DNA from: Octopus bimaculoides
Taxonomy: Eukaryota
Reading direction: 5' to 3'
Assembly (NCBI RefSeq): GCF_001194135.2
Contig: NC_068988.1
Coordinates: 29,000,146 to 29,048,421, forward strand
Length of the DNA: 48,276 bases
The notes below the pieces were generated by a model. It saw only the letters and a list, made by a program, of their open reading frames with translations, ran no database searches and had not been told where the DNA came from. The translations under genes and the position numbers were made by a program. Below are positions 2,622 to 48,276 of this stretch, piece by piece (position 1 is the first letter of the stretch; each line of letters starts with the position of its first letter).

Positions 2622-3446
2622 NNNNNNNNNNNNNNNNNNNNNNNNNNNNNNNNNNNNNNNNNNNNNNNNNNNNNNNNNNNNNNNNNNNNNNNNNNNNNNN
2701 NNNNNNNNNNNNNNNNNNNNNNNNNNNNNNNNNNNNNNNNNNNNNNNNNNNNNNNNNNNNNNNNNNNNNNNNNNNNNNNNNNNNNNNNNNNNNNNNNNNN
2801 NNNNNNNNNNNNNNNNNNNNNNNNNNNNNNNNNNNNNNNNNNNNNNNNNNNNNNNNNNNNNNNNNNNNNNNNNNNNNNNNNNNNNNNNNNNNNNNNNNNN
2901 NNNNNNNNNNNNNNNNNNNNNNNNNNNNNNNNNNNNNNNNNNNNNNNNNNNNNNNNNNNNNNNNNNNNNNNNNNNNNNNNNNNNNNNNNNNNNNNNNNNN
3001 NNNNNNNNNNNNNNNNNNNNNNNNNNNNNNNNNNNNNNNNNNNNNNNNNNNNNNNNNNNNNNNNNNNNNNNNNNNNNNNNNNNNNNNNNNNNNNNNNNNN
3101 NNNNNNNNNNNNNNNNNNNNNNNNNNNNNNNNNNNNNNNNNNNNNNNNNNNNNNNNNNNNNNNNNNNNNNNNNNNNNNNNNNNNNNNNNNNNNNNNNNNN
3201 NNNNNNNNNNNNNNNNNNNNNNNNNNNNNNNNNNNNNNNNNNNNNNNNNNNNNNNNNNNNNNNNNNNNNNNNNNNNNNNNNNNNNNNNNNNNNNNNNNNN
3301 NNNNNNNNNNNNNNNNNNNNNNNNNNNNNNNNNNNNNNNNNNNNNNNNNNNNNNNNNNNNNNNNNNNNNNNNNNNNNNNNNNNNNNNNNNNNNNNNNNNN
3401 NNNNNNNNNNNNNNNNNNNNNNNNNNNNNNNNNNNNNNNNNNNNNN
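2622..3446. other. Assembly gap, one of about twenty. Other large gaps: 5898-6401, 11832-12249, 17468-17978, 18858-19472, 24357-25054 and 46488-46740
   Basis: N runs, nearly always flanked by (TA)n or (CA)n tracts. Confidence 0.98.
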
Positions 3447-4399: not shown

Positions 4400-4716
4400 C
4401 AATATTCCCTCGACTATCACAGGTGAAAATCCGCGAAGTAGAAACAGTACTGTACTGTATATTTTTTAAAATTTTCATAATTTGTATATATTCATTTTAT
4501 TATAAATGCAAAACAACACCACAGAGGAATCAATGTAAGCTTAAATAATAAACGGCGATAGGTGAACGGCGATAGTTGAACGGCGATAGTTGAACGGCGA
4601 TAGTTGAACCGCGATAGTTGAACCGCGATAGTTGAACCGCGATAGTTGAACCGCGATAGTTGAACCGCGATAGTTGAACCGCGATAGTTGAACCGCGAGA
4701 TGGCGAGGGATTACTG
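4400..4716. mobile_element. pogo/Tigger-like MITE (Tc1/mariner superfamily) with TA target duplication
   Basis: TA at 4398-4399 and 4717-4718. Left end ta-caatattccctcg versus reverse complement of right end ta-cagtaatccctcg (13/15 match including TA). No ORF. Confidence 0.65.
4551..4700. repeat. 14-bp minisatellite AAC(G/C)GCGATAGTTG, 10 full units plus a partial, inside the MITE
   Basis: Counted directly: 4 units with AACGGCG, then 6 with AACCGCG. Confidence 0.95.
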
Positions 4717-13821: not shown

Positions 13822-14227
13822 TCTTTTATCTTTTATCGTTTATCTTTTACCTGTTTCAGTCATTAGTCTGAGGCCATGCTGGGACGCCGCCTTAAAGTTT
13901 TAGCCGAATGAATCGACCCCAGTACTTATTCTTTAAGCCTGGTATTTATTCTATCGGTTCTTTTTGTGGAACCGCTAAGTTACGGGGACGTAAACACACC
14001 AACACCCGGTTGTCAAGTGGTGACGAGGAGAGACAGACACACAAACATAGACGTGTATACATATATATACGACGGGCTTCTTTCAGTTTCCCTCTACCAT
14101 ATCCACTAACAAGACTTGGGTCGGCCCGAAGCTATTGTAGAAGATACTTGCCCAAGGTGCTACACAGGGGGACTGAACCTGGAACCATGTGGTTCGGAAG
14201 CAAGCTTTTTACTACACGGCCACACCT
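13822..14227 (-). mobile_element. tRNA-derived SINE family A (CORE-like centre, internal CA/TA microsatellite), full length
   Basis: Minus strand: tRNA-like head with B box GGTTCAGTCCC, a CCTTGGGCAAGT CORE-like block, and a (TAAAAG)n-type tail. Homologous to the copies at 29366, 32728, 35692 and 47990. Confidence 0.85.
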
Positions 14228-16104: not shown

Positions 16105-17979
16105 GCAAGGAAAAGATGAAGGCAGAGTCGACCTCGGTGGAATTTCTACTCAGAACGTAAATTCAGACGAAATTTTGTTAAATATTTTGTTCGACATGCT
16201 AACGATTCTATCAGCTCGCTGCCTTATATCTTGTCAATAATAAGGCGATTTGAACCCCGCACACACTAATAGTCATGCAGAAGCATAACATAAAATTGAG
16301 TTGCATTGTTATCGTCTTCATGTCAAAATATGCAAATGTTTTACCAGCACAAAAGTGCAGTTTTAAATCGCCACAAAAATCGCATTTGTTTCACGTTTAA
16401 TTTGTCAAGCATTTAGATGGATGAATTTTGTCTGATGATAACCAACGTATCAACTTGTGTCGATACTGCGTTCAGTTGATATTCCCGTTGAGAATCAAGG
16501 TATAGGAAACCGGAATAATTTTCATTCTCAAATTACTTCTGAGAGAATTCAAGTATATTTATGTGTACTTGTCTATACACAACTCTGTTTTTATTATTTA
16601 TATTCATGTATATACACATTCATATATATGCAAGCTCGCGTATAAGCTGGATATATACGAGTTTATGGCAACGTGTTTGTCTGTACATTTTTGTCTGTAT
16701 GTGTGAATGTGTATATGCATGTTTGTGTACGTATTTGTGTGTATGCGTATTTGTATATTTGCCTGGATATGAGTATGAATACGTCATTGTGTACTTGCAT
16801 GTGTATGGATGTTTCTATGCAGCTGTATAACCCTGCATATGTTTTCACTCATGGATTCGAAAAAAAAGTATCTATAAAACAACATACAATGAAATTTCTC
16901 ATATTCTCTACATTTTGAACAGTAACAATGCTTCTAGGGATAAACCAAGAATATAAATGCTGTTACTTACTATGCTACAAGTCTCTTTACATGTTGTTTT
17001 ACATATGTTTTTAAATAAGAACAAAGTGAATTAAATAAAACGTAAATAAGTTGCATGTTTTTTTTATCAATATCTCTTCAGTTTTTCTTTTCTCTATTGT
17101 ACTTATATCGGAAATATTTCACGAATATTCTGTATTATCAAATGTATTGTACAATTAGAGAAAAAAAAACTGGTAGAGAGTTTAAAATGTTAAAGTACTC
17201 GATTAAACATTATACGGTATCCTGTTTCGTATGTCTGTGCGACGAGTCTCAATTTGCAAAACTGAGTGGTTAAGAAATTAACCACTCGCAACCAAGTAGC
17301 TCCGTGTTCGATTTGATTGCCGGCTTTTTGGGAACATGTATTCTGATTTAGCTTCGAGTTGACCAATGCCTGCCGAAATGGAATATGGCAAACAGAAACT
17401 GTGTTTATTTGGCAAAAAATACGACTATCCCGAAGGATAACAATACATATATATGTATATATATATANNNNNNNNNNNNNNNNNNNNNNNNNNNNNNNNN
17501 NNNNNNNNNNNNNNNNNNNNNNNNNNNNNNNNNNNNNNNNNNNNNNNNNNNNNNNNNNNNNNNNNNNNNNNNNNNNNNNNNNNNNNNNNNNNNNNNNNNN
17601 NNNNNNNNNNNNNNNNNNNNNNNNNNNNNNNNNNNNNNNNNNNNNNNNNNNNNNNNNNNNNNNNNNNNNNNNNNNNNNNNNNNNNNNNNNNNNNNNNNNN
17701 NNNNNNNNNNNNNNNNNNNNNNNNNNNNNNNNNNNNNNNNNNNNNNNNNNNNNNNNNNNNNNNNNNNNNNNNNNNNNNNNNNNNNNNNNNNNNNNNNNNN
17801 NNNNNNNNNNNNNNNNNNNNNNNNNNNNNNNNNNNNNNNNNNNNNNNNNNNNNNNNNNNNNNNNNNNNNNNNNNNNNNNNNNNNNNNNNNNNNNNNNNNN
17901 NNNNNNNNNNNNNNNNNNNNNNNNNNNNNNNNNNNNNNNNNNNNNNNNNNNNNNNNNNNNNNNNNNNNNNNNNNNNNNC

Positions 17980-18485
17980 TTTTGATGATTTTGTGTGTGT
18001 GTAAAATTTCCTTTAATTTGGGGTCCTTATGTAGCATTGGTATGTTTTGGGTGATGATGGTGAAGGCTTCTTTGTTTCTGGGGTTGTATGTGGATATGTA
18101 CGGCAGTATTTTCGGGGAAGGTGTGTTGCTGTGTTTAACTTTTCTTAAGTTTTCTATGTTAATTTGTGATGCACGTCTGATTCCATCCTCTATGAATTGA
18201 ACTGGGTAGTGTCTGTCAATTAGTGTGTTTTTGAGTTCTTGTAGTCTGTAGTCTCTAGTATTTTGTTCTGACACTATTGTGCATATCCTTCTTGCAAGGT
18301 TGAAGGAGATGTTTGTCTTGGGTGGCATGAATCAAATAGTAGATATTGCCTGGCGTCTGTGGTTTTGTAAAATATGTCCGTTTATATTTTTAGGTTTATT
18401 TTTTAATTAGTATATCCAAGAATGGGAGCTCCTTTTGGTTGTACTCCATTATGAACTGTATGTTTGGGTTGACACTGTTCAATAG
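17980..18485 (-). mobile_element. Penelope-like retroelement, RT C-terminal/thumb region, decayed
   Basis: LNSVNPNIQFIMEYNQKELPFLDILIKK ... TDIFYKTTDARQYLLFDSCHP / KTNISFNLARRICTIVSEQNTRDYRLQELKNTLIDRHYP ... LPYISTYNP. These are hallmark PLE motifs (LPFLD, TDxYxKxT..YL..S.HP, RICT, YP). Frameshifted; runs into a gap. Confidence 0.9.
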
Positions 18486-24251: not shown

Positions 24252-25584
24252 GTCTGCCAGCTAAAATACAACTAAAATTCCGCCCCTGTACGGCTGATAA
24301 TTCGCTTGCCACTCGTGATGGTATTTTAATAATACCATCCCTATATATATATATATNNNNNNNNNNNNNNNNNNNNNNNNNNNNNNNNNNNNNNNNNNNN
24401 NNNNNNNNNNNNNNNNNNNNNNNNNNNNNNNNNNNNNNNNNNNNNNNNNNNNNNNNNNNNNNNNNNNNNNNNNNNNNNNNNNNNNNNNNNNNNNNNNNNN
24501 NNNNNNNNNNNNNNNNNNNNNNNNNNNNNNNNNNNNNNNNNNNNNNNNNNNNNNNNNNNNNNNNNNNNNNNNNNNNNNNNNNNNNNNNNNNNNNNNNNNN
24601 NNNNNNNNNNNNNNNNNNNNNNNNNNNNNNNNNNNNNNNNNNNNNNNNNNNNNNNNNNNNNNNNNNNNNNNNNNNNNNNNNNNNNNNNNNNNNNNNNNNN
24701 NNNNNNNNNNNNNNNNNNNNNNNNNNNNNNNNNNNNNNNNNNNNNNNNNNNNNNNNNNNNNNNNNNNNNNNNNNNNNNNNNNNNNNNNNNNNNNNNNNNN
24801 NNNNNNNNNNNNNNNNNNNNNNNNNNNNNNNNNNNNNNNNNNNNNNNNNNNNNNNNNNNNNNNNNNNNNNNNNNNNNNNNNNNNNNNNNNNNNNNNNNNN
24901 NNNNNNNNNNNNNNNNNNNNNNNNNNNNNNNNNNNNNNNNNNNNNNNNNNNNNNNNNNNNNNNNNNNNNNNNNNNNNNNNNNNNNNNNNNNNNNNNNNNN
25001 NNNNNNNNNNNNNNNNNNNNNNNNNNNNNNNNNNNNNNNNNNNNNNNNNNNNNNCATGCTGAAATTTTATTCAATAATCCGCCATAACTTATTAAATTTA
25101 ATTTTTGTTCCAGCGTTAGAATCAGTCGTGACAAAGAATAAACGTTGAAACCTCCAAGAACTTGAAATTCCAACTTTAACAAATATAGGAAGTTGTACTA
25201 ATTGTCATGGATGTGTATATTTCTATCTAAAGGCAAGTTGTTGAACACGAGAGCTAATAAAAAAACATGCATTTTTAAAGGGAAATGATATTGAATTTTC
25301 AGCAAATTAATTTTTTAAAAAGTTGTTTCTCTCTTTTAAACAAAATCTTGAACAGGTATTTAGAAAAATAAAAAAAAGATATTTCTCTCTATCAAACTAT
25401 ATAATAGAAATGATAAAGTTAGCCGAACATTGAAGCACTACAAGTAGCTAATGCAGTTTCGTGTTACACTTAACTTTATGTCAATTATTTTTTTCTATCC
25501 CTAAAATGTTCAGTTTTTCCGTATTATTCTCGTGTTTGATACAATTTCAGAAATCCAATCTTATTTTCAATCCGAAGCTTCCCA

Positions 25585-26981: not shown

Positions 26982-28090
26982 NNNNNNNNNNNNNNNNNNN
27001 NNNNNNNNNNNNNNNNNNNNNNNNNNNNNNNNNNNNNNNNNNNNNNNNNNNNNNNNNNNNNNNNNNNNNNNNNNNNNNNNNNNNNNNNNNNNNNNNNNNN
27101 NNNNNNNNNNNNNNNNNNNNNNNNNNNNNNNNNNNNNNNNNNNNNNNNNNNNNNNNTATACTTTTTCTGAAAGAAAGTAACTTCTAGCCTGTTGATTTTT
27201 ATTTCAGAGATCGTCTCGGTGACATTCCTTACTTAAATGTAATTGCATCAGAATAACTTTATATATTTGAACAATTCGATATAAGATTATTCTCTTTTTA
27301 CAGAAACGGAATAGAATTTCTCGAAGTGACAACGTCGTGTTATGAAATCCGATAAAATCAATATTTAGCATTTCTTTATTGTTATTTAATCAGGGAAAAG
27401 CACAAAATTAGCAGAACCAGTACAGTAAGGGACAAAAGGTTCTGCGGTTTTGTGTCGACGTCCCCAGACGATGAAGTAGGCTAGCCCAATACGTAGATAT
27501 ATTGGGAGAAGTCTAGACGTAGTAGTAGTTGAGTAGAGGTCATTCGAACGTGCGATATAACAGTGGCGACGAGGATTTCGTAGCTCAACACAGCCACTGT
27601 GTAGTATTGTGATATAACAGGTTTTTACGCTAATTACTCCCTTTAAAGTTATAAGTTCAATCTCACCATGATCCACATTGCCTTTCATTTATATTCGATA
27701 AAACAATGTGCTAATCAAGTTCTGAAGATCGATCACATCTATGATATTCTCCAACTGTCGGAGTATTGAAGTATTGAATCCATGGTAGAATTCATTCTTT
27801 ATTTAGTGACGATGGTGTGGACGGCCTGGGGCTATAGTAAAAGACACTCGTCCAAGGTGCTGCGCATTGAGACCGAACTCGAAACTACGTGGTTGCAAAG
27901 CGAACTCCTTAACAACATAACAATGTATATTATATAATATCTAGTCCTACGTTCTCTTGTCATATCAAGTATATCATATGCATAACACTTGCCTTTACAC
28001 AGAATTTCATTTTGACGAACACAACTATCCACTGTGTTCAACTAAAAATACCGCCATTTTTCATTTCTATAATTTTCTGTTTATTGACAG

Positions 28091-28253
28091 GACTGTTAGG
28101 AGTTTTCGGAAATGGCATTGTACTATCCATGTTCTCTATATACAAAGCATTGAGAACACCGACCAATATGTTGTTTATTAATCTGGCTGTTAATGACATT
28201 GGGATGTGTCTTTGTCTCTTCCCAATTGCAGGGATATCAAGTTTTAAACGAGT
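28091..28253 (+). CDS. RRH: Internal coding exon (probably exon 2; TM1-ICL1-TM2) of a peropsin-like Group-4 opsin GPCR
   Basis: Acceptor ttattgacAG (28089-28090) and donor GTAAGT (28254-28259). Translation (G)LLGVFGNGIVLSMFSIYKALRTPTNMLFINLAVNDIGMCLCLFPIAGISSFKR(V) has the class A GN and LRTPTN..NLAVxD motifs and resembles human RRH (KELRTPTN..NLAVTDIG, recalled). Starts phase 1, ends phase 2. Confidence 0.85.
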
Positions 28254-29365
28254 GTAAGTTTTTGCATGTTTTCCTTATTCTCTCTCACCATTTTTGTCTT
28301 ATATGACTTCTCTTATAGTCACACATCTGTGACTTATATGACCTCTCATTCTGTTTCTTTTTTGTTTCACTTTTTGTCTCAATTCCCTTTTTTTTATAAT
28401 TGACTTTATCCGTACATCAACGTCTAACGGTACAAATATACCCAGAACGCACATGAGCCACTTGGCACAGCAGTTTTGGCGCCGCCTGTTTGGCATCATT
28501 GAGTCGACGCTGACCTATTCGACATCACACGTATTAATATTTCGTTTCCTCTCCTTCTCTCTCTCTCTCTTTCTCTCTCCCTTCTCTGTCTCTCACTCTC
28601 TGTATGTGTTTATGCATGTAAGCGTACTTCTCTATTTGGGAGAAAAAGTGTTTATGTCAGTCGTGTTCAATTAATCATTATATCGTTTCTCTTCCTTTTC
28701 TCTCTCTCTCACTCTTTCTATTTCTATGTATATATTACTGCGTGTGTGCCTGTATGTCAGCGTGTTTTTGTATGTATATCTCTTTGTATATGTGTGCGTG
28801 CGTGTGTGTGTGTGTGTGTGTGTGTGCGTGCGTGCGTGCGTGTTTGTCTGTCTCTGATGCCAAAATGTACTGTCGCCGTCCAGTCAGCCGTGCCAAATGA
28901 TCTCATTCAGAGTCATATAGCAACGTGTGGTCCTAGCAATATGAGGGAAGAATACGAAGACCAGCTACAGCTGAATGCAGTAATTCTCTTTAACAAGCTG
29001 CTGCAGGACATTTATACAACTAGGAAGGTGGAAGCCAGCGGAAGTGCGACTCTGGTGACAATAATAATGGTGAACCATTTGAAATTTTATGATTCTTAGT
29101 GGACTCCATTATGGACCGAATAAAAATTCATAGACTTGCTCTTAAAGGAATAATTACAATACAATTATTGTAAAAAAAAAAACAGCAAAAAACTGGCAAT
29201 CCTTGTAGTAATGGAAATAAGCATTTAGGAAACTGTTACAATATCTTTTATGTTTTACTTATTTCAGTCCTTGGGCTGCGGCCATACTGGAGCAAGGCCT
29301 TGTAATGGTTAGTCGAACAAAACGATTCCATATCACGAAATGATAGTTTGGAAACTGATTCTGAT

Positions 29366-29579
29366 TATTCTTTTACTTTTATTCTTTTATTTGTTTCAAT
29401 TATTTGACTGTGGCCATGCTGGAGCACCGCCTTTAGTCGAGCAAATCGACCCCAGGACTTATTCTTTGTAAGCCTAGTACTTATTATATCGGTTTCATTT
29501 GTCGAACCGGTATGTGACGGACACGTAAACACACCAGCATCGGTTGTCAAGCGATGTTGGGGGGACAAACACAGGCACA

Positions 29580-29616
<37 letters not shown>

Positions 29617-29736
29617 GTATGTATATATATATATATATGACGGGTTTCTTTCAGTTTCCGCGTACCAAATCCACTCGCAAGGCTTTAGTCGGCCCGAGGC
29701 TACAGTAGGAGACACTTGCCCAAGGTGCCACGCAGT
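29366..29736 (-). mobile_element. SINE family A copy, head truncated, in opsin intron
   Basis: High similarity to 32728-33123. Confidence 0.85.
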
Positions 29737-29975
29737 AGATGGCAAAATGGTAATCGAGATGAACTGAGATCTTCAGATGAAGAAATGAAGCAGCTAATTC
29801 GCATGTCAGAAATACAATCTGTAAGTGGAACAGTAAAAATATGGAAGACTTTTATCAAGTTTAAAATATGACATTGTTTTTGTTATCTATATTCCAACGA
29901 TGGAGCTTTGTGTCTTTGTTAGAAACCAGAGGAAGATTTCAAATAATTAAAAACAGAAGAGAACCTACAAACATA

Positions 29976-30191
29976 CGAGGGGGTGCTGAAAAGTTCTTGG
30001 CTTTAAGGGTGTCGCGAAAGACCTTGCTGGAGGCCCAACCTTCCGAGTACTTTTACAGGGCTTAGAAAAATTAAAAGACCCCTGCAATAAGTGTGTGAAT
30101 CTGATAGAGGAGTATGTTGAATAAAATCATAATTAACTAATCCTCCTGTATTTCTTTTACCCAAAGCCAGGAACTTTTCAGCACCCCCTCG
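29976..30191 (+). mobile_element. 216-bp mariner-derived MITE with TIRs and TA duplication
   Basis: TA-cgagggggtgctgaaaagttcttggcttt ... aaagccaggaacttttcagcaccccctcg-TA (one mismatch in about 29 bp). Interior retains the mariner C-terminus LQGLEKLKDPCNKCVNLIEEYVE*. Confidence 0.9.
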
Positions 30192-30282
30192 TAGATGAAA
30201 AGAAAGTAGATGATATATAAAATGTATATTTTCTAGAAAATGCCATGTGTACGGTAACACTTTTCTTTCTCATCTTTTTCAG

Positions 30283-30410
30283 GTGGATCTTTGGTACAAC
30301 TGGTTGTCAGTGGTATGGCTTCACAGGGATGTTGTTCGGACTAGCAAATATTGGCTTTCTCACAGCTATCAGTGTAGATCGATATTTGATCACTTGTAAA
30401 TACTATATTT
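30283..30410 (+). CDS. RRH: Next coding exon (probably exon 3; ECL1-TM3-DRY) of the same peropsin-like opsin
   Basis: Polypyrimidine tract ttttctttctcatctttttcAG (AG 30281-30282) and donor GTAAGT at 30411. The phase-2 start joins the previous exon in frame (GT+G = Val). Translation WIFGTTGCQWYGFTGMLFGLANIGFLTAISVDRYLITCKYYI has the ECL1 WxFGxxGC, Tyr at the bovine-113 equivalent and a DRY motif. Ends phase 1. Opsin versus other class A GPCR cannot be settled without TM7. Confidence 0.85.
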
Positions 30411-31532
30411 GTAAGTATCATGTATTGTTTCAACAATCTTGTGTTACTTTAGCACAAATATTGCCTGACAAACACCACACCCAAATATAAGCTTATGAAT
30501 ATGTAGTATAAACACCCCCACTACCATGCCGAATAACCCTCCTTCAAGACTATAAATCTTAAATACACCCTTCCTACTTATGTCGTAGTGATGTCCCCTC
30601 TTATAAAACCTCTTTAATTTGTTTTGATTTGGCAAAGTCATCCTGCGACCAGCAATGATCGGGCAATCACAAAATATGCACATTCGGTGGATTTTAAATG
30701 ATTTCTAAATGTTTCTTAAATGTTTTTTAAATGTCCTTAACAGTATAGTTTGTGTGTTCATCTGAAGAAAACAATTTTTATAATAATATAATGTACTCAC
30801 TGATGAATTTAAAAAAGTTCGTTGGAAACGGCTGTAACGAATCAACACCTATCCAGCCTTTGTTATGTACTTATTCATAATTCACCTCTCTCAGAACCTG
30901 TTCCCCGCGTATTCCGAAATATATTATGGACCATAAAGTTAATACTACATGAGTTTCTGAATTAACCCAAGGGCTGATGATATACTCAGTCGGTTTCAGT
31001 TGAATGTATGCATACCCTGAATATCTTTCTGCCTGTACTTCGGTACCAGTGTTTGTATTCGTCTGCCTACCTGTCTGCCTGCCTGTCTGCCTGTCTGCCT
31101 GTCTACCTGCCTGTCTGTCTACCTACCTACCTACCTACCTACCTACCTACCTACCTACCTACCTACCTACCTACCTGTCTATCTATCTATCTATCTATCT
31201 ATCCATCTATCTATCTATCTATCCATCTATCTATCTATCTATCCATCCATCTATCTATCTATCTATCTATCTACACGTATATACCTACATGGTTGTGTGT
31301 GTAGGCAAGCGAATATAGTTTGCTCTCCTGTACACTATTCGTATATCTGAAACACGCCATCCATCTAGTAAACATGTTTATGTTCAGTTTTGTTATTTTT
31401 TATTTGGTGAATCTCATATTCGCTCTCATCTCTGATATTATCTCGACATATTCTCATACGCAAGCCAATACCACTACGTTCATAACAAACATTTATCCAA
31501 ACACTTACAAATACTTACATAGCACCTCCTAT

Positions 31533-32727: not shown

Positions 32728-32933
32728 TATTTTACTTGGTTCAGTCATTTGCTGGAGCACCGCCTTTTATCGAGCAAATCGACCCCAGGACTCAGTCTTT
32801 GGAAGCCTAGTACTTATTCTATCGGTCTTTTTTGCCGAACCGCTAAGTTACGGGGACGTAAACACACCAGCATTGGTTGTCAAGCGATGTTGGGGGGACA
32901 AACACAGACACACTAACATATACACAAACATAC

Positions 32934-32964
<31 letters not shown>

Positions 32965-33123
32965 CGACGGGCTTCTTTCAGTTTCCGTCTACCAAATCCA
33001 CTCACAAGGCTTTGGTCGGCCCGAGGCTATAGTAGAAGTCACTTGCTGAAGGTGCCACGCAGTGGGACTGAACCCGGAACCATGTGGTTGGTAAGCAAGC
33101 TACTTACCACACAGTCACTCCTA
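32728..33123 (-). mobile_element. SINE family A copy, full length
   Basis: Head (minus) ggagtgactgtgtggtaagtagcttgcttaccaaccacatggttccgggttcagtccc; A and B boxes visible. Confidence 0.9.
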
Positions 33124-34597: not shown

Positions 34598-34806
34598 TAT
34601 TCTTTTATTCTTTTACTTGTTTCAGTCATTTGACTGCGGCCATGCTGGAGCATCGCCTTTAGTCGAGCAAATCGACACGAGGACTTATTCCATCGGCCTC
34701 TTTTGCCGAACCGCTAAGTCACAGGGACGTAAACACACCAATACCTGTTGTCAAGCGATGTTGGGGGGACAAACACACACGCACACCTACCTACATAATA
34801 TATATA
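34598..34806 (-). mobile_element. SINE family A, 3' half, broken by a gap at its internal microsatellite
   Basis: Matches 32728-32950. Confidence 0.85.
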
Positions 34807-35001
34807 NNNNNNNNNNNNNNNNNNNNNNNNNNNNNNNNNNNNNNNNNNNNNNNNNNNNNNNNNNNNNNNNNNNNNNNNNNNNNNNNNNNNNNNNNNNNNN
34901 NNNNNNNNNNNNNNNNNNNNNNNNNNNNNNNNNNNNNNNNNNNNNNNNNNNNNNNNNNNNNNNNNNNNNNNNNNNNNNNNNNNNNNNNNNNNNNNNNNNN
35001 N

Positions 35002-35691: not shown

Positions 35692-36082
35692 ATCTTTTAT
35701 TTGTTTCAATCATTAGACTGCGGCCATACTAGGGCACCACTTTGTAGAATTTTTAGTCCAATGAATCGATTCCAGTACTTATTACATTTTGTATGAAGCC
35801 CGGTACTTATTCTGTCGGTGTCTTTTACAGAACCGCTAAGTTATGGAGACATAGACACGCCAACACGGGTTGTCAAACGATGCTGGGGACAAACACAAAG
35901 ACACACACACACACCAACACACGATGGGCTTCCTTCAGTTTCCGTCAGCCAAATCCACTCACAAAGCTTTGGTCGGTCCGACGCTATAGTAGAAGATATT
36001 TGTCCAAGGTGCCACGCAGTGAGACTGAACCCGGGACCATGTGGATGGGAAGCAAACATTTTACCACCCAACAACGCCTGGG
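35692..36082 (-). mobile_element. SINE family A copy, more diverged
   Basis: Same block order as 32728-33123. Confidence 0.85.
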
Positions 36083-46912: not shown

Positions 46913-47841
46913 TGTTAGGGGTAATGTAGCCTCAGAAATTGTCTGACAGTCAGCGACTGGGTTCTCCTGCTTGTGCGGCATGGTGCAGAGTCCTGTTGCC
47001 AGACATAGGGTCTTTCAGCAGCCACCTTCTTGACCCAGGGAAGTACTACCTCCTCTAGGCACTTGATGTAGGCCTCCGTGTTGAGTCTGAGGCTGTGTGG
47101 GAAGATGAACGGAAGCATAACGTCACTATCACTAGTGATCACTCCAAACACCATGATGTTGACTGGATGTTTGATTTTTATCACTCTTGGTAGATGATTT
47201 GGGGAAACAGCAAGCCAACGCTTGTCCTGTGGGTTCACGATCTGATATTGGCAGAAACTTTTCTCGTCTGAGAAAAACAAAAGCATGTTCAGTTGAAGAA
47301 GATGCTTGAGTTTGTTCAAAAGCTTCGTAGCGCGGTCTTTCCTCCTGTCCTTGATGGCTTGGAATAAAAATTGGCCCTTTCTCATCTTGTATGAGGAATA
47401 CTGAATGTCTTTATACACTAACAGCCTGATAAGAAACTTAGACACTCCCATGTCCCTGGCGATGGACCTGATTTATTTGGAGTGATCGTTGTCAATCGTG
47501 ACCTGAATCTCACCAAGATATTAAAGAGTTCTTTTCTTATGAGAACCGTCAGAGTGAGTTTTCCGAGCTGCCGTGCCTTCGTAATCACCATTAAACTCAT
47601 CCAACTCTTTCCGAATTCTCTGCACTGTCCTCAGACTGACACCTAAACACTAAACACTCTGAAATGTTCGTATTGGAGCTTCCGGCACGAAGGCCAAGCA
47701 GTACAGCATATCGTCATCGTGCTGTTTTTCTTACAGACAGTGCCCAACTGACCCTACTATACTGCGTAGTCGACAAAATCAAAAACAAACAATGCGCATG
47801 TTCGAAATTAAAAACATAAAATGGCGACAATTTACCGATCG
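46913..47841 (-). mobile_element. maT/Bmmar1-like mariner-family transposon: 5' end, HTH and DD catalytic region; 3' truncated at a SINE
   Basis: ORF 47451-46915 contains FFSDEK, HPVNIMVFGVITSD, YIKCLEEVVLPW and YVWQQDSAP. An upstream frame gives RYAVLLGLRAG..GVSLRTVQRIRKEL..IRSIARDMGVS. It ends (frameshifted) LSDNF*GYITPNI, just before the expected WPPxSPD. Left end TA-cgatcggtaaattgtcgcc at 47843-47823. Confidence 0.88.
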
Positions 47842-47989: not shown

Positions 47990-48276
47990 TTCTCTTTTAC
48001 TCTTTTACTTGTTTCAGTCATTTGACTGGGGCCATGCTGGAGCACCGCCTTTAGTCGAGCAAATCGACCCCGGGACTTATTCTTTGTAAGCCTAGTACTT
48101 ATTCTATCGGTCTCTTTTTGCCGAACCGCTACGTGACGGGGACATAAACATACCAGCATTGATTGTCAAGCAATGCTAGGAGGACAAACACAGACACACA
48201 CATATATATATATACATATATACGACGGGCTTCTTTCAGTTTCCGTCTACAAAATCCACTCACAAGGCTCTGGTCG
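47990..48276 (-). mobile_element. SINE family A copy running off the window end
   Basis: Matches 32728-33020. Confidence 0.85.

Follow-up and report, generated by a model that had tools for sequence, protein, structure and literature searches.

A stretch of 48,276 nucleotides from Octopus bimaculoides (NCBI RefSeq assembly GCF_001194135.2, contig NC_068988.1, positions 29,000,146 to 29,048,421 of the forward strand) contains two small exons that encode part of an opsin, transmembrane segments 1 to 3 (TM1-TM3). We refer to the whole stretch as the window and give positions in its own numbering. The two exons are confirmed as genuine parts of a peropsin-like opsin gene. With high confidence, we assign them as exons 2 and 3 of an intact gene of hundreds of kilobases that belongs to the mollusc peropsin-like clade of the tetraopsins ('Group 4'). 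According to later papers that quote Albertin et al. 2015, the gene has reportedly been known since that work. It is annotated in RefSeq and present in the literature (PMC5521729, PMC10733189, PMC8465341); the identification proposed in an earlier note on this DNA was correct, but is therefore not new.

Two coding exons of an opsin in the window

We read positions 27800-30700 of the window directly for reading frames and splice sites. This gave the following features, some of which were also supported by other methods, as indicated.

28089..28090, + strand: splice acceptor AG of exon 2, with a T-rich tract upstream (direct reading)
28091..28253, + strand: coding exon A, exon 2 of the RefSeq model (direct reading, residue match, tblastn)
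28254..30282, + strand: intron of 2,029 nt, GT...AG, phase 2 (direct reading)
30283..30410, + strand: coding exon B, exon 3 of the RefSeq model (direct reading, tblastn, residue mapping)
30411..30416, + strand: splice donor GTAAGT of exon 3 (direct reading)

The 3' boundary of exon A is a GT|GTAAGT donor, the intron starting at 28254, and exon B follows an AG acceptor at 30281-82, where the upstream letters read ...TTTTTCAG. Exon A opens in phase 1 and closes in phase 2, and exon B closes in phase 1; one phase-1 intron lies upstream of exon 2 and another one downstream of exon 3. When the two exons were joined, the sole open frame encoded 96 residues covering TM1-TM3 (xLLGVFGNGIVLSMFSIYKALRTPTNMLFINLAVNDIGMCLCLFPIAGISSFKRVWIFGTTGCQWYGFTGMLFGLANIGFLTAISVDRYLITCKYYI, where x is the partial first codon), and this peptide matched Pfam 7tm_1 with an E-value of 9.6e-21, which is well outside what chance would give.

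Exon 2 encodes residue 35 (split codon, phase 1) to residue 89 (split codon, phase 2), which comprises the second half of TM1, intracellular loop 1 with LRTPTN, TM2 with NLAVND, and extracellular loop 1. Exon 3 encodes residues 89/90-131 and the first base of Tyr132, and contributes WIFGTTGC (with the equivalent of Cys110), TM3 and DRY. It also encodes a Tyr that alignment to the verified bovine rhodopsin sequence placed at position 113. The earlier note had reported that the two exons join in frame, that they contain LRTPTN, NLAVxD, WxFGxxGC and DRY, and that a Tyr occupies the bovine Glu113 site. All of this was found again on direct reading; the coordinates given in the note were exact, and the splice sites are canonical (AG/GT).

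The full-length protein and its residues

With the 96-aa fragment as query, a word-index search for homologues gave no match, and relatives were found by an exhaustive search of 1.84 billion representative proteins. The O. bimaculoides 'peropsin' XP_052825979.1 (P0151, 325 aa) was 100% identical to the fragment over all 96 residues. The exon 2 peptide is identical to residues 36-89 of P0151, the exon 3 peptide matched it at 100% identity over 42 aa in tblastn, and the splice junctions (TG|LLGV, FKRV|WIFG, and KYYI|Y) are the same as in this independent RefSeq model. The O. vulgaris/O. sinensis orthologue ('visual pigment-like receptor peropsin', XP_029640189.1, P0002, 325 aa) differs from the window peptide at 2 of the 96 positions (98% identity), and its cluster also contains XP_052825979.1 and one Argonauta hians protein. 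Over its full length, P0151 showed 97% identity with the O. vulgaris/O. sinensis protein and 89% with that of Argonauta hians (BLASTP), and it matched Pfam 7tm_1 over residues 41-290 (2.5e-46).

Residues were mapped by alignment to bovine rhodopsin; the RRH, RGR, and bovine sequences were verified by exact look-up, as were Todarodes retinochrome and its relatives, including O. vulgaris retinochrome. The TM7 Schiff-base lysine is present in P0151 (K280, bovine K296, in FAKSS) as well as in its orthologues from O. vulgaris and Argonauta. The equivalent of E181 is Glu168, so that the protein combines a non-acidic residue at 113, encoded in exon B of the window, with an acidic residue, the candidate counterion, at 181. 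P0151 also has N55, D83, C110, C187, Y223, Q247, and W265 (bovine numbering), D134-R135-Y136, N302-P303-Y306 (NPLIY), and N-R-R-F at 310-313. Human RRH and the mollusc peropsin-like opsins show the same pattern. Retinochromes have ERY and a short tail, and lack D83, N302, and Y306, while RGR has H113, GRY, and NAxxY. Thus, the residues that the earlier note had proposed to look for (the Lys296 equivalent, Glu181, and the post-lysine tripeptide, here NRR) were all found in the full-length protein of the same species. Its statement that the fragment lacks the retinochrome-type divergence also holds for P0151, in which DRY and NPLIY are present and the C-terminus is of full length.

Signalling pigment or photoisomerase

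In the mechanism that we propose, retinal would be bound through a Schiff base on Lys280, Glu168 would serve as the counterion, and position 113 would be occupied by a neutral Tyr. In the account of Nagata 2010 and 2018 given in PMC8628405, the characterised peropsins carry all-trans-retinal in the dark and convert it to the 11-cis form in the light, as reported for those of amphioxus and jumping spider. By analogy with these two pigments, the octopod protein would probably also carry all-trans-retinal in the dark and turn it into 11-cis-retinal on illumination. It would still be able to switch a G protein, possibly as a pigment that is active in the dark and inactivated by light, rather than act as a pure photoisomerase. 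We lean towards a signalling-competent opsin because D83, DRY, Y223, NPxxY, and F313 are all kept in its sequence, while they are lost in retinochrome and RGR. McElroy et al. 2023 similarly noted that the conserved NPxxY and tripeptide suggest that mollusc peropsin may drive phototransduction (PMC10733189).

A more specific proposal would be that the octopod peropsin-like opsin is a signalling photoreceptor outside the main visual pathway (in the skin, suckers, or brain), dark-active with all-trans-retinal and switched off by light, and not a recycler of retinal; octopods would have kept the gene, and squids and cuttlefish would have lost it and duplicated retinochrome. We put this proposal forward tentatively and consider it, taken as a whole, rather unlikely.

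A serious rival is that the product of the same gene is a pure retinal photoisomerase without any signalling role, providing octopods with a second supply of 11-cis-retinal, like the second retinochrome of squids. This appears to us a real possibility, if somewhat short of an even chance. The gene belongs to the RGR/retinochrome/peropsin group, for which visual cycling has been proposed as the ancestral function (Voecking et al., PMC8628405), and it has a gene structure in common with retinochrome (see below). Furthermore, one retinochrome and a peropsin occur in octopus species, as against two retinochromes but no peropsin in squids, and similar functions have been suggested (McElroy et al. 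2023, PMC10733189). On the other hand, the G-protein microswitch residues listed above are kept, and they are conserved among octopods whose proteins are 89-97% identical; in addition, the expression reported for peropsin in retinal and optic-lobe tissue is low relative to that of retinochrome.

Relationship to other opsins

When P0151 was used as a phmmer query against reference opsins, the highest scores were obtained with mollusc peropsin-like opsins (254-310 bits), Limulus peropsin 1 (269 bits), and human RRH (257 bits), followed by ambulacrarian peropsins (206-242 bits). RRH was thus among the top non-mollusc scores, those of the Limulus and spider peropsins being slightly higher, and in a reciprocal search with human RRH, the octopus protein ranked beside the invertebrate peropsins. 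The r-opsins, Opn5, and Opn3 were found in the range of 165-176 bits (Diadema r-opsin, 176; Opn5-like, 173; Opn3, 173). Bovine rhodopsin (151 bits), human RGR (105 bits), and Octopus retinochrome (99.5 bits) scored lower. The scores for the Maritigrella and Terebratalia xenopsins were 163-169 bits. The identity of P0151 in BLASTP was 46% with Mercenaria, 39% with human RRH, and 25% with Octopus retinochrome.

A neighbour-joining (NJ) tree was computed from 54 sequences and 318 columns with 200 bootstraps, and sequences without names were labelled afterwards by cluster look-up. The octopod proteins formed a clade with 100% support, which joined Haliotis, Crassostrea, and Mercenaria at 61%. They were excluded from the clades of retinochromes (97%), chelicerate peropsins (87%), xenopsins (99%, with the Maritigrella and Terebratalia sequences), Opn5/6 (100%), and r-opsins (88%). 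We also counted the sister group of the octopod clade in 300 further NJ bootstraps. It consisted of mollusc peropsin-like sequences only in 233/300, of peropsin-named groups only in 263/300, and of Opn5/6 in 8/300; retinochromes alone or xenopsins alone were the sister group in 0/300. Published maximum-likelihood trees support the RGR/retinochrome/peropsin group as a whole, with an ultrafast bootstrap (UFBoot) value of 98 (PMC5521729). In the same study, Ramirez et al. 2016 found, outside the protostome retinochromes, a small clade comprising sequences from C. gigas, L. gigantea, and O. bimaculoides, to which the name of the mollusc peropsin-like clade goes back.

These data agree with the view of the earlier note that the protein is neither the visual rhodopsin nor retinochrome, the latter being among its weakest opsin matches. 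The protein also did not group with neuropsin/Opn5, xenopsins, or non-opsin class A G-protein-coupled receptors (GPCRs), which the note had named as groups that would speak against its identification, nor with c-opsins or r-opsins. The note's more specific designation as a peropsin is supported: the protein scored highest with human RRH and with the peropsins of molluscs, chelicerates, and ambulacrarians, and the mollusc clade was recovered. The link with RRH, though, received weak support (see below). The label 'peropsin' is not demonstrably monophyletic, as McElroy et al. 2023 also remarked (PMC10733189), and the octopus gene is best described as belonging to the mollusc peropsin-like clade.

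The nearest relatives are the mollusc peropsin-like opsins of Crassostrea gigas, Lottia gigantea, Haliotis, and Mercenaria (38-46% identity, 241-287 bits in BLASTP). Like the octopus protein, they have Y113, DRY, K296, NPxxY, and an N-K/R-R tripeptide, but position 181 is Asp in Crassostrea and Mercenaria and Glu in octopods. Human RRH (OPSX_HUMAN, 337 aa; 39% identity over 320 aa, 246-257 bits) has LRTPTN, Y113, DRY, Q247, FAKSS, NPxxY, and an N-K-K/R tripeptide in common with the octopus protein; position 181 is acidic in both, but is Asp in RRH and Glu in the octopus protein. The chelicerate peropsins (Limulus peropsin 1 and those of spiders) are 40-41% identical and have the same Y113, DRY, E181, K296, and NPxxY, but form the separate clade mentioned above and have an N-P-R/K tripeptide followed by Leu instead of Phe313. 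Cephalopod retinochrome (REIS_TODPA of Todarodes and the retinochrome-like protein of O. vulgaris) falls into the same broad opsin group: K296 and E181 are present, residue 113 is not acidic, and the three introns seen in the window have counterparts of identical position and phase; it differs by its low identity (~25%) and score (~100 bits), its own clade, its ERY, its short C-terminus, and the absence of D83, N302, and Y306.

A number of points weigh against our assignment. The clade of octopod and other mollusc sequences joined the deuterostome peropsins, including RRH, at only 33% in the NJ tree, the deep nodes of which were below 25%, and the whole RGR/retinochrome/peropsin group was not recovered with support. 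The references in this tree comprised no Go-opsin and no noncanonical r-opsin. Published trees disagree on the position of the mollusc peropsin-like opsins, and their link to vertebrate RRH has been called unresolved (PMC10733189, PMC8628405). The window itself holds only TM1-TM3, K296, E181, and NPxxY having been read from the database protein of the same species and not from the window DNA. Finally, the low expression of peropsin in octopod retina and optic lobe was reported along with a role described as undeciphered (2026 preprint).

We also considered that the annotation might have misnamed an opsin of another class, i.e. a divergent retinochrome paralogue, a xenopsin, a noncanonical r-opsin, a neuropsin, or a Go-opsin. 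In a PDB sequence search, the top solved-structure matches were indeed squid and spider r-opsins, and the NCBI label 'peropsin' is by itself unreliable, as illustrated by a Tubulanus 'peropsin' and a bird protein (see below). Yet, the score with human RRH exceeded the best of the r-opsin, Opn5, and xenopsin scores by about 80 bits and that of retinochrome by about 150 bits, the clades of retinochromes, xenopsins, Opn5/6, and r-opsins exclude the octopod protein with the support given above, the features that mark retinochromes (ERY, N302 and Y306 lost, a short tail) are absent, and cephalopods are reported to have neither Go-opsin nor neuropsin (PMC10733189). A misnamed opsin of another class is therefore very improbable. 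An r-opsin identity based on the PDB ranking was rejected, as full-length comparisons reversed this ranking, which is biased because there was no peropsin among the PDB matches.

With respect to names in databases, the Tubulanus protein carries the automated name 'visual pigment-like receptor peropsin' and groups with the retinochromes at 97%. P0212, a bird 'hypothetical protein' from the same match list that we first took for RRH, was Opn5-like in the intron alignment, and many 'peropsins' of ~400 aa from amphibians and reptiles stand among opsin-5-like proteins in the list of homologue matches.

Intron positions

We mapped the exons of three other genes on their loci and compared the introns in a common alignment. 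The introns of the octopus peropsin-like gene at residues 35 (phase 1), 89 (phase 2), and 132 (phase 1) correspond to columns 36, 90, and 133. In the O. vulgaris retinochrome gene, all three positions are occupied by introns of the same phases, and a further two introns follow downstream. Columns 90 and 133 are also intron sites, in the same phases, in the Mercenaria peropsin-like gene, which has the same two downstream introns as the retinochrome gene; in the bird Opn5-like gene (P0212), the intron at column 133, with its phase, and one of those downstream are found again. Such sharing fits a common origin within the tetraopsins. It also confirms that the exon boundaries read in the window are genuine.

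Between the Mercenaria peropsin-like gene (11 kb) and the O. vulgaris retinochrome gene (54 kb), five intron positions are common or nearly so, the first intron being at column 26 (phase 2) in the former and at column 36 (phase 1) in the latter. The intron may truly have shifted, or the first exon of the clam gene model may be incorrect.

An intact gene of several hundred kilobases

The gene encoding the 325-aa protein spans 357-359 kb in O. vulgaris and O. sinensis, and this explains why only two exons are found in a window of 48 kb. No other exon of the full-length protein was detected in the window by tblastn with P0002 and P0151 as queries, and motif scans and tblastn of the window for exon 1 and the TM4-TM7 exons yielded low-complexity noise only. 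The gene is much larger than its 11-kb counterpart in Mercenaria, from which it also differs in the position of the first intron. Another long gene is that of the Argiope peropsin (>100 kb).

Two older O. bimaculoides models, P0001 (206 aa, 100% identical to the window peptide) and P0153 (193 aa), represent the gene split in two and are incomplete: P0001 lacks the TM4-TM5 exons, and the first residues of P0153 are spurious. The two models appear to be artefacts that arose when a gene of several hundred kilobases was annotated on a gapped draft.

The presence of only two exons in 48 kb, the surrounding repeats and assembly gaps, and the incompleteness of the older models might suggest a dead gene fragment (a pseudogene or exon relic) lying in repeat DNA, but this is hardly credible given that the frames of both exons are open and their splice sites canonical, that a complete 325-aa model exists in the same species, that intact orthologues are present in O. 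vulgaris/O. sinensis and Argonauta, that peropsin transcripts have been reported from several octopods, and that the ~358-kb orthologue gene accounts for the missing exons.

Repeats, gaps, and other features of the window

The earlier note described the exons as buried in repeat DNA. This is a fair description, as the 2,029-nt intron holds microsatellites ((TC)n, (TG)n, and (AC)n tracts), interspersed repeats, and an element with terminal inverted repeats (TIRs). The latter element (220 nt, 29974-30193) has TIRs of 31 nt that are 97% complementary (TACGAGGGGGTGCTGAAAAGTTC...), and looks like a non-autonomous DNA transposon of the miniature inverted-repeat transposable element (MITE) type. An interspersed repeat of ~330 nt (families D18/D19) with an internal (CA)n and copies that are 64-87% identical is present in the intron at 29469-29795; further copies lie at 32802-33122, 35795-36079, 14033-14227, 34673-34800, and 48088-48215. 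It may be a short interspersed nuclear element (SINE); no tRNA-like head was found in the interspersed repeats by ARAGORN.

The window contains 16 runs of N (4,906 nt in total; e.g. 2622-3446, 24357-25054, 26982-27156, and 34807-35001), many of them flanked by microsatellites. As this is a draft assembly with 16 gaps, small features could be hidden in these. Two open reading frames (ORFs) on the minus strand, of 178 aa (46915-47451) and 307 aa (17405-18328, with an N gap inside), are not of low complexity. Neither had a match in Pfam, and the 178-aa ORF had none in the PDB; they resemble what would be left of proteins from mobile elements. At 4551-4704 lies a 14-nt minisatellite, (AACGGCGATAGTTG)n, in about 11 copies, with a G-to-C change spreading along the array.

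Implications

The present analysis mainly confirms that an opsin can be recognised and correctly classed from two small exons in repeat-rich DNA. To our knowledge, no mollusc peropsin-like opsin has been characterised so far. The octopod gene keeps all the G-protein switch residues, and the decapodiform cephalopods have lost the gene. If its product is a signalling-competent pigment, as we are inclined to think, what is at stake is a third functional light-sensing pathway in cephalopods, which would exist besides those of rhodopsin and retinochrome.

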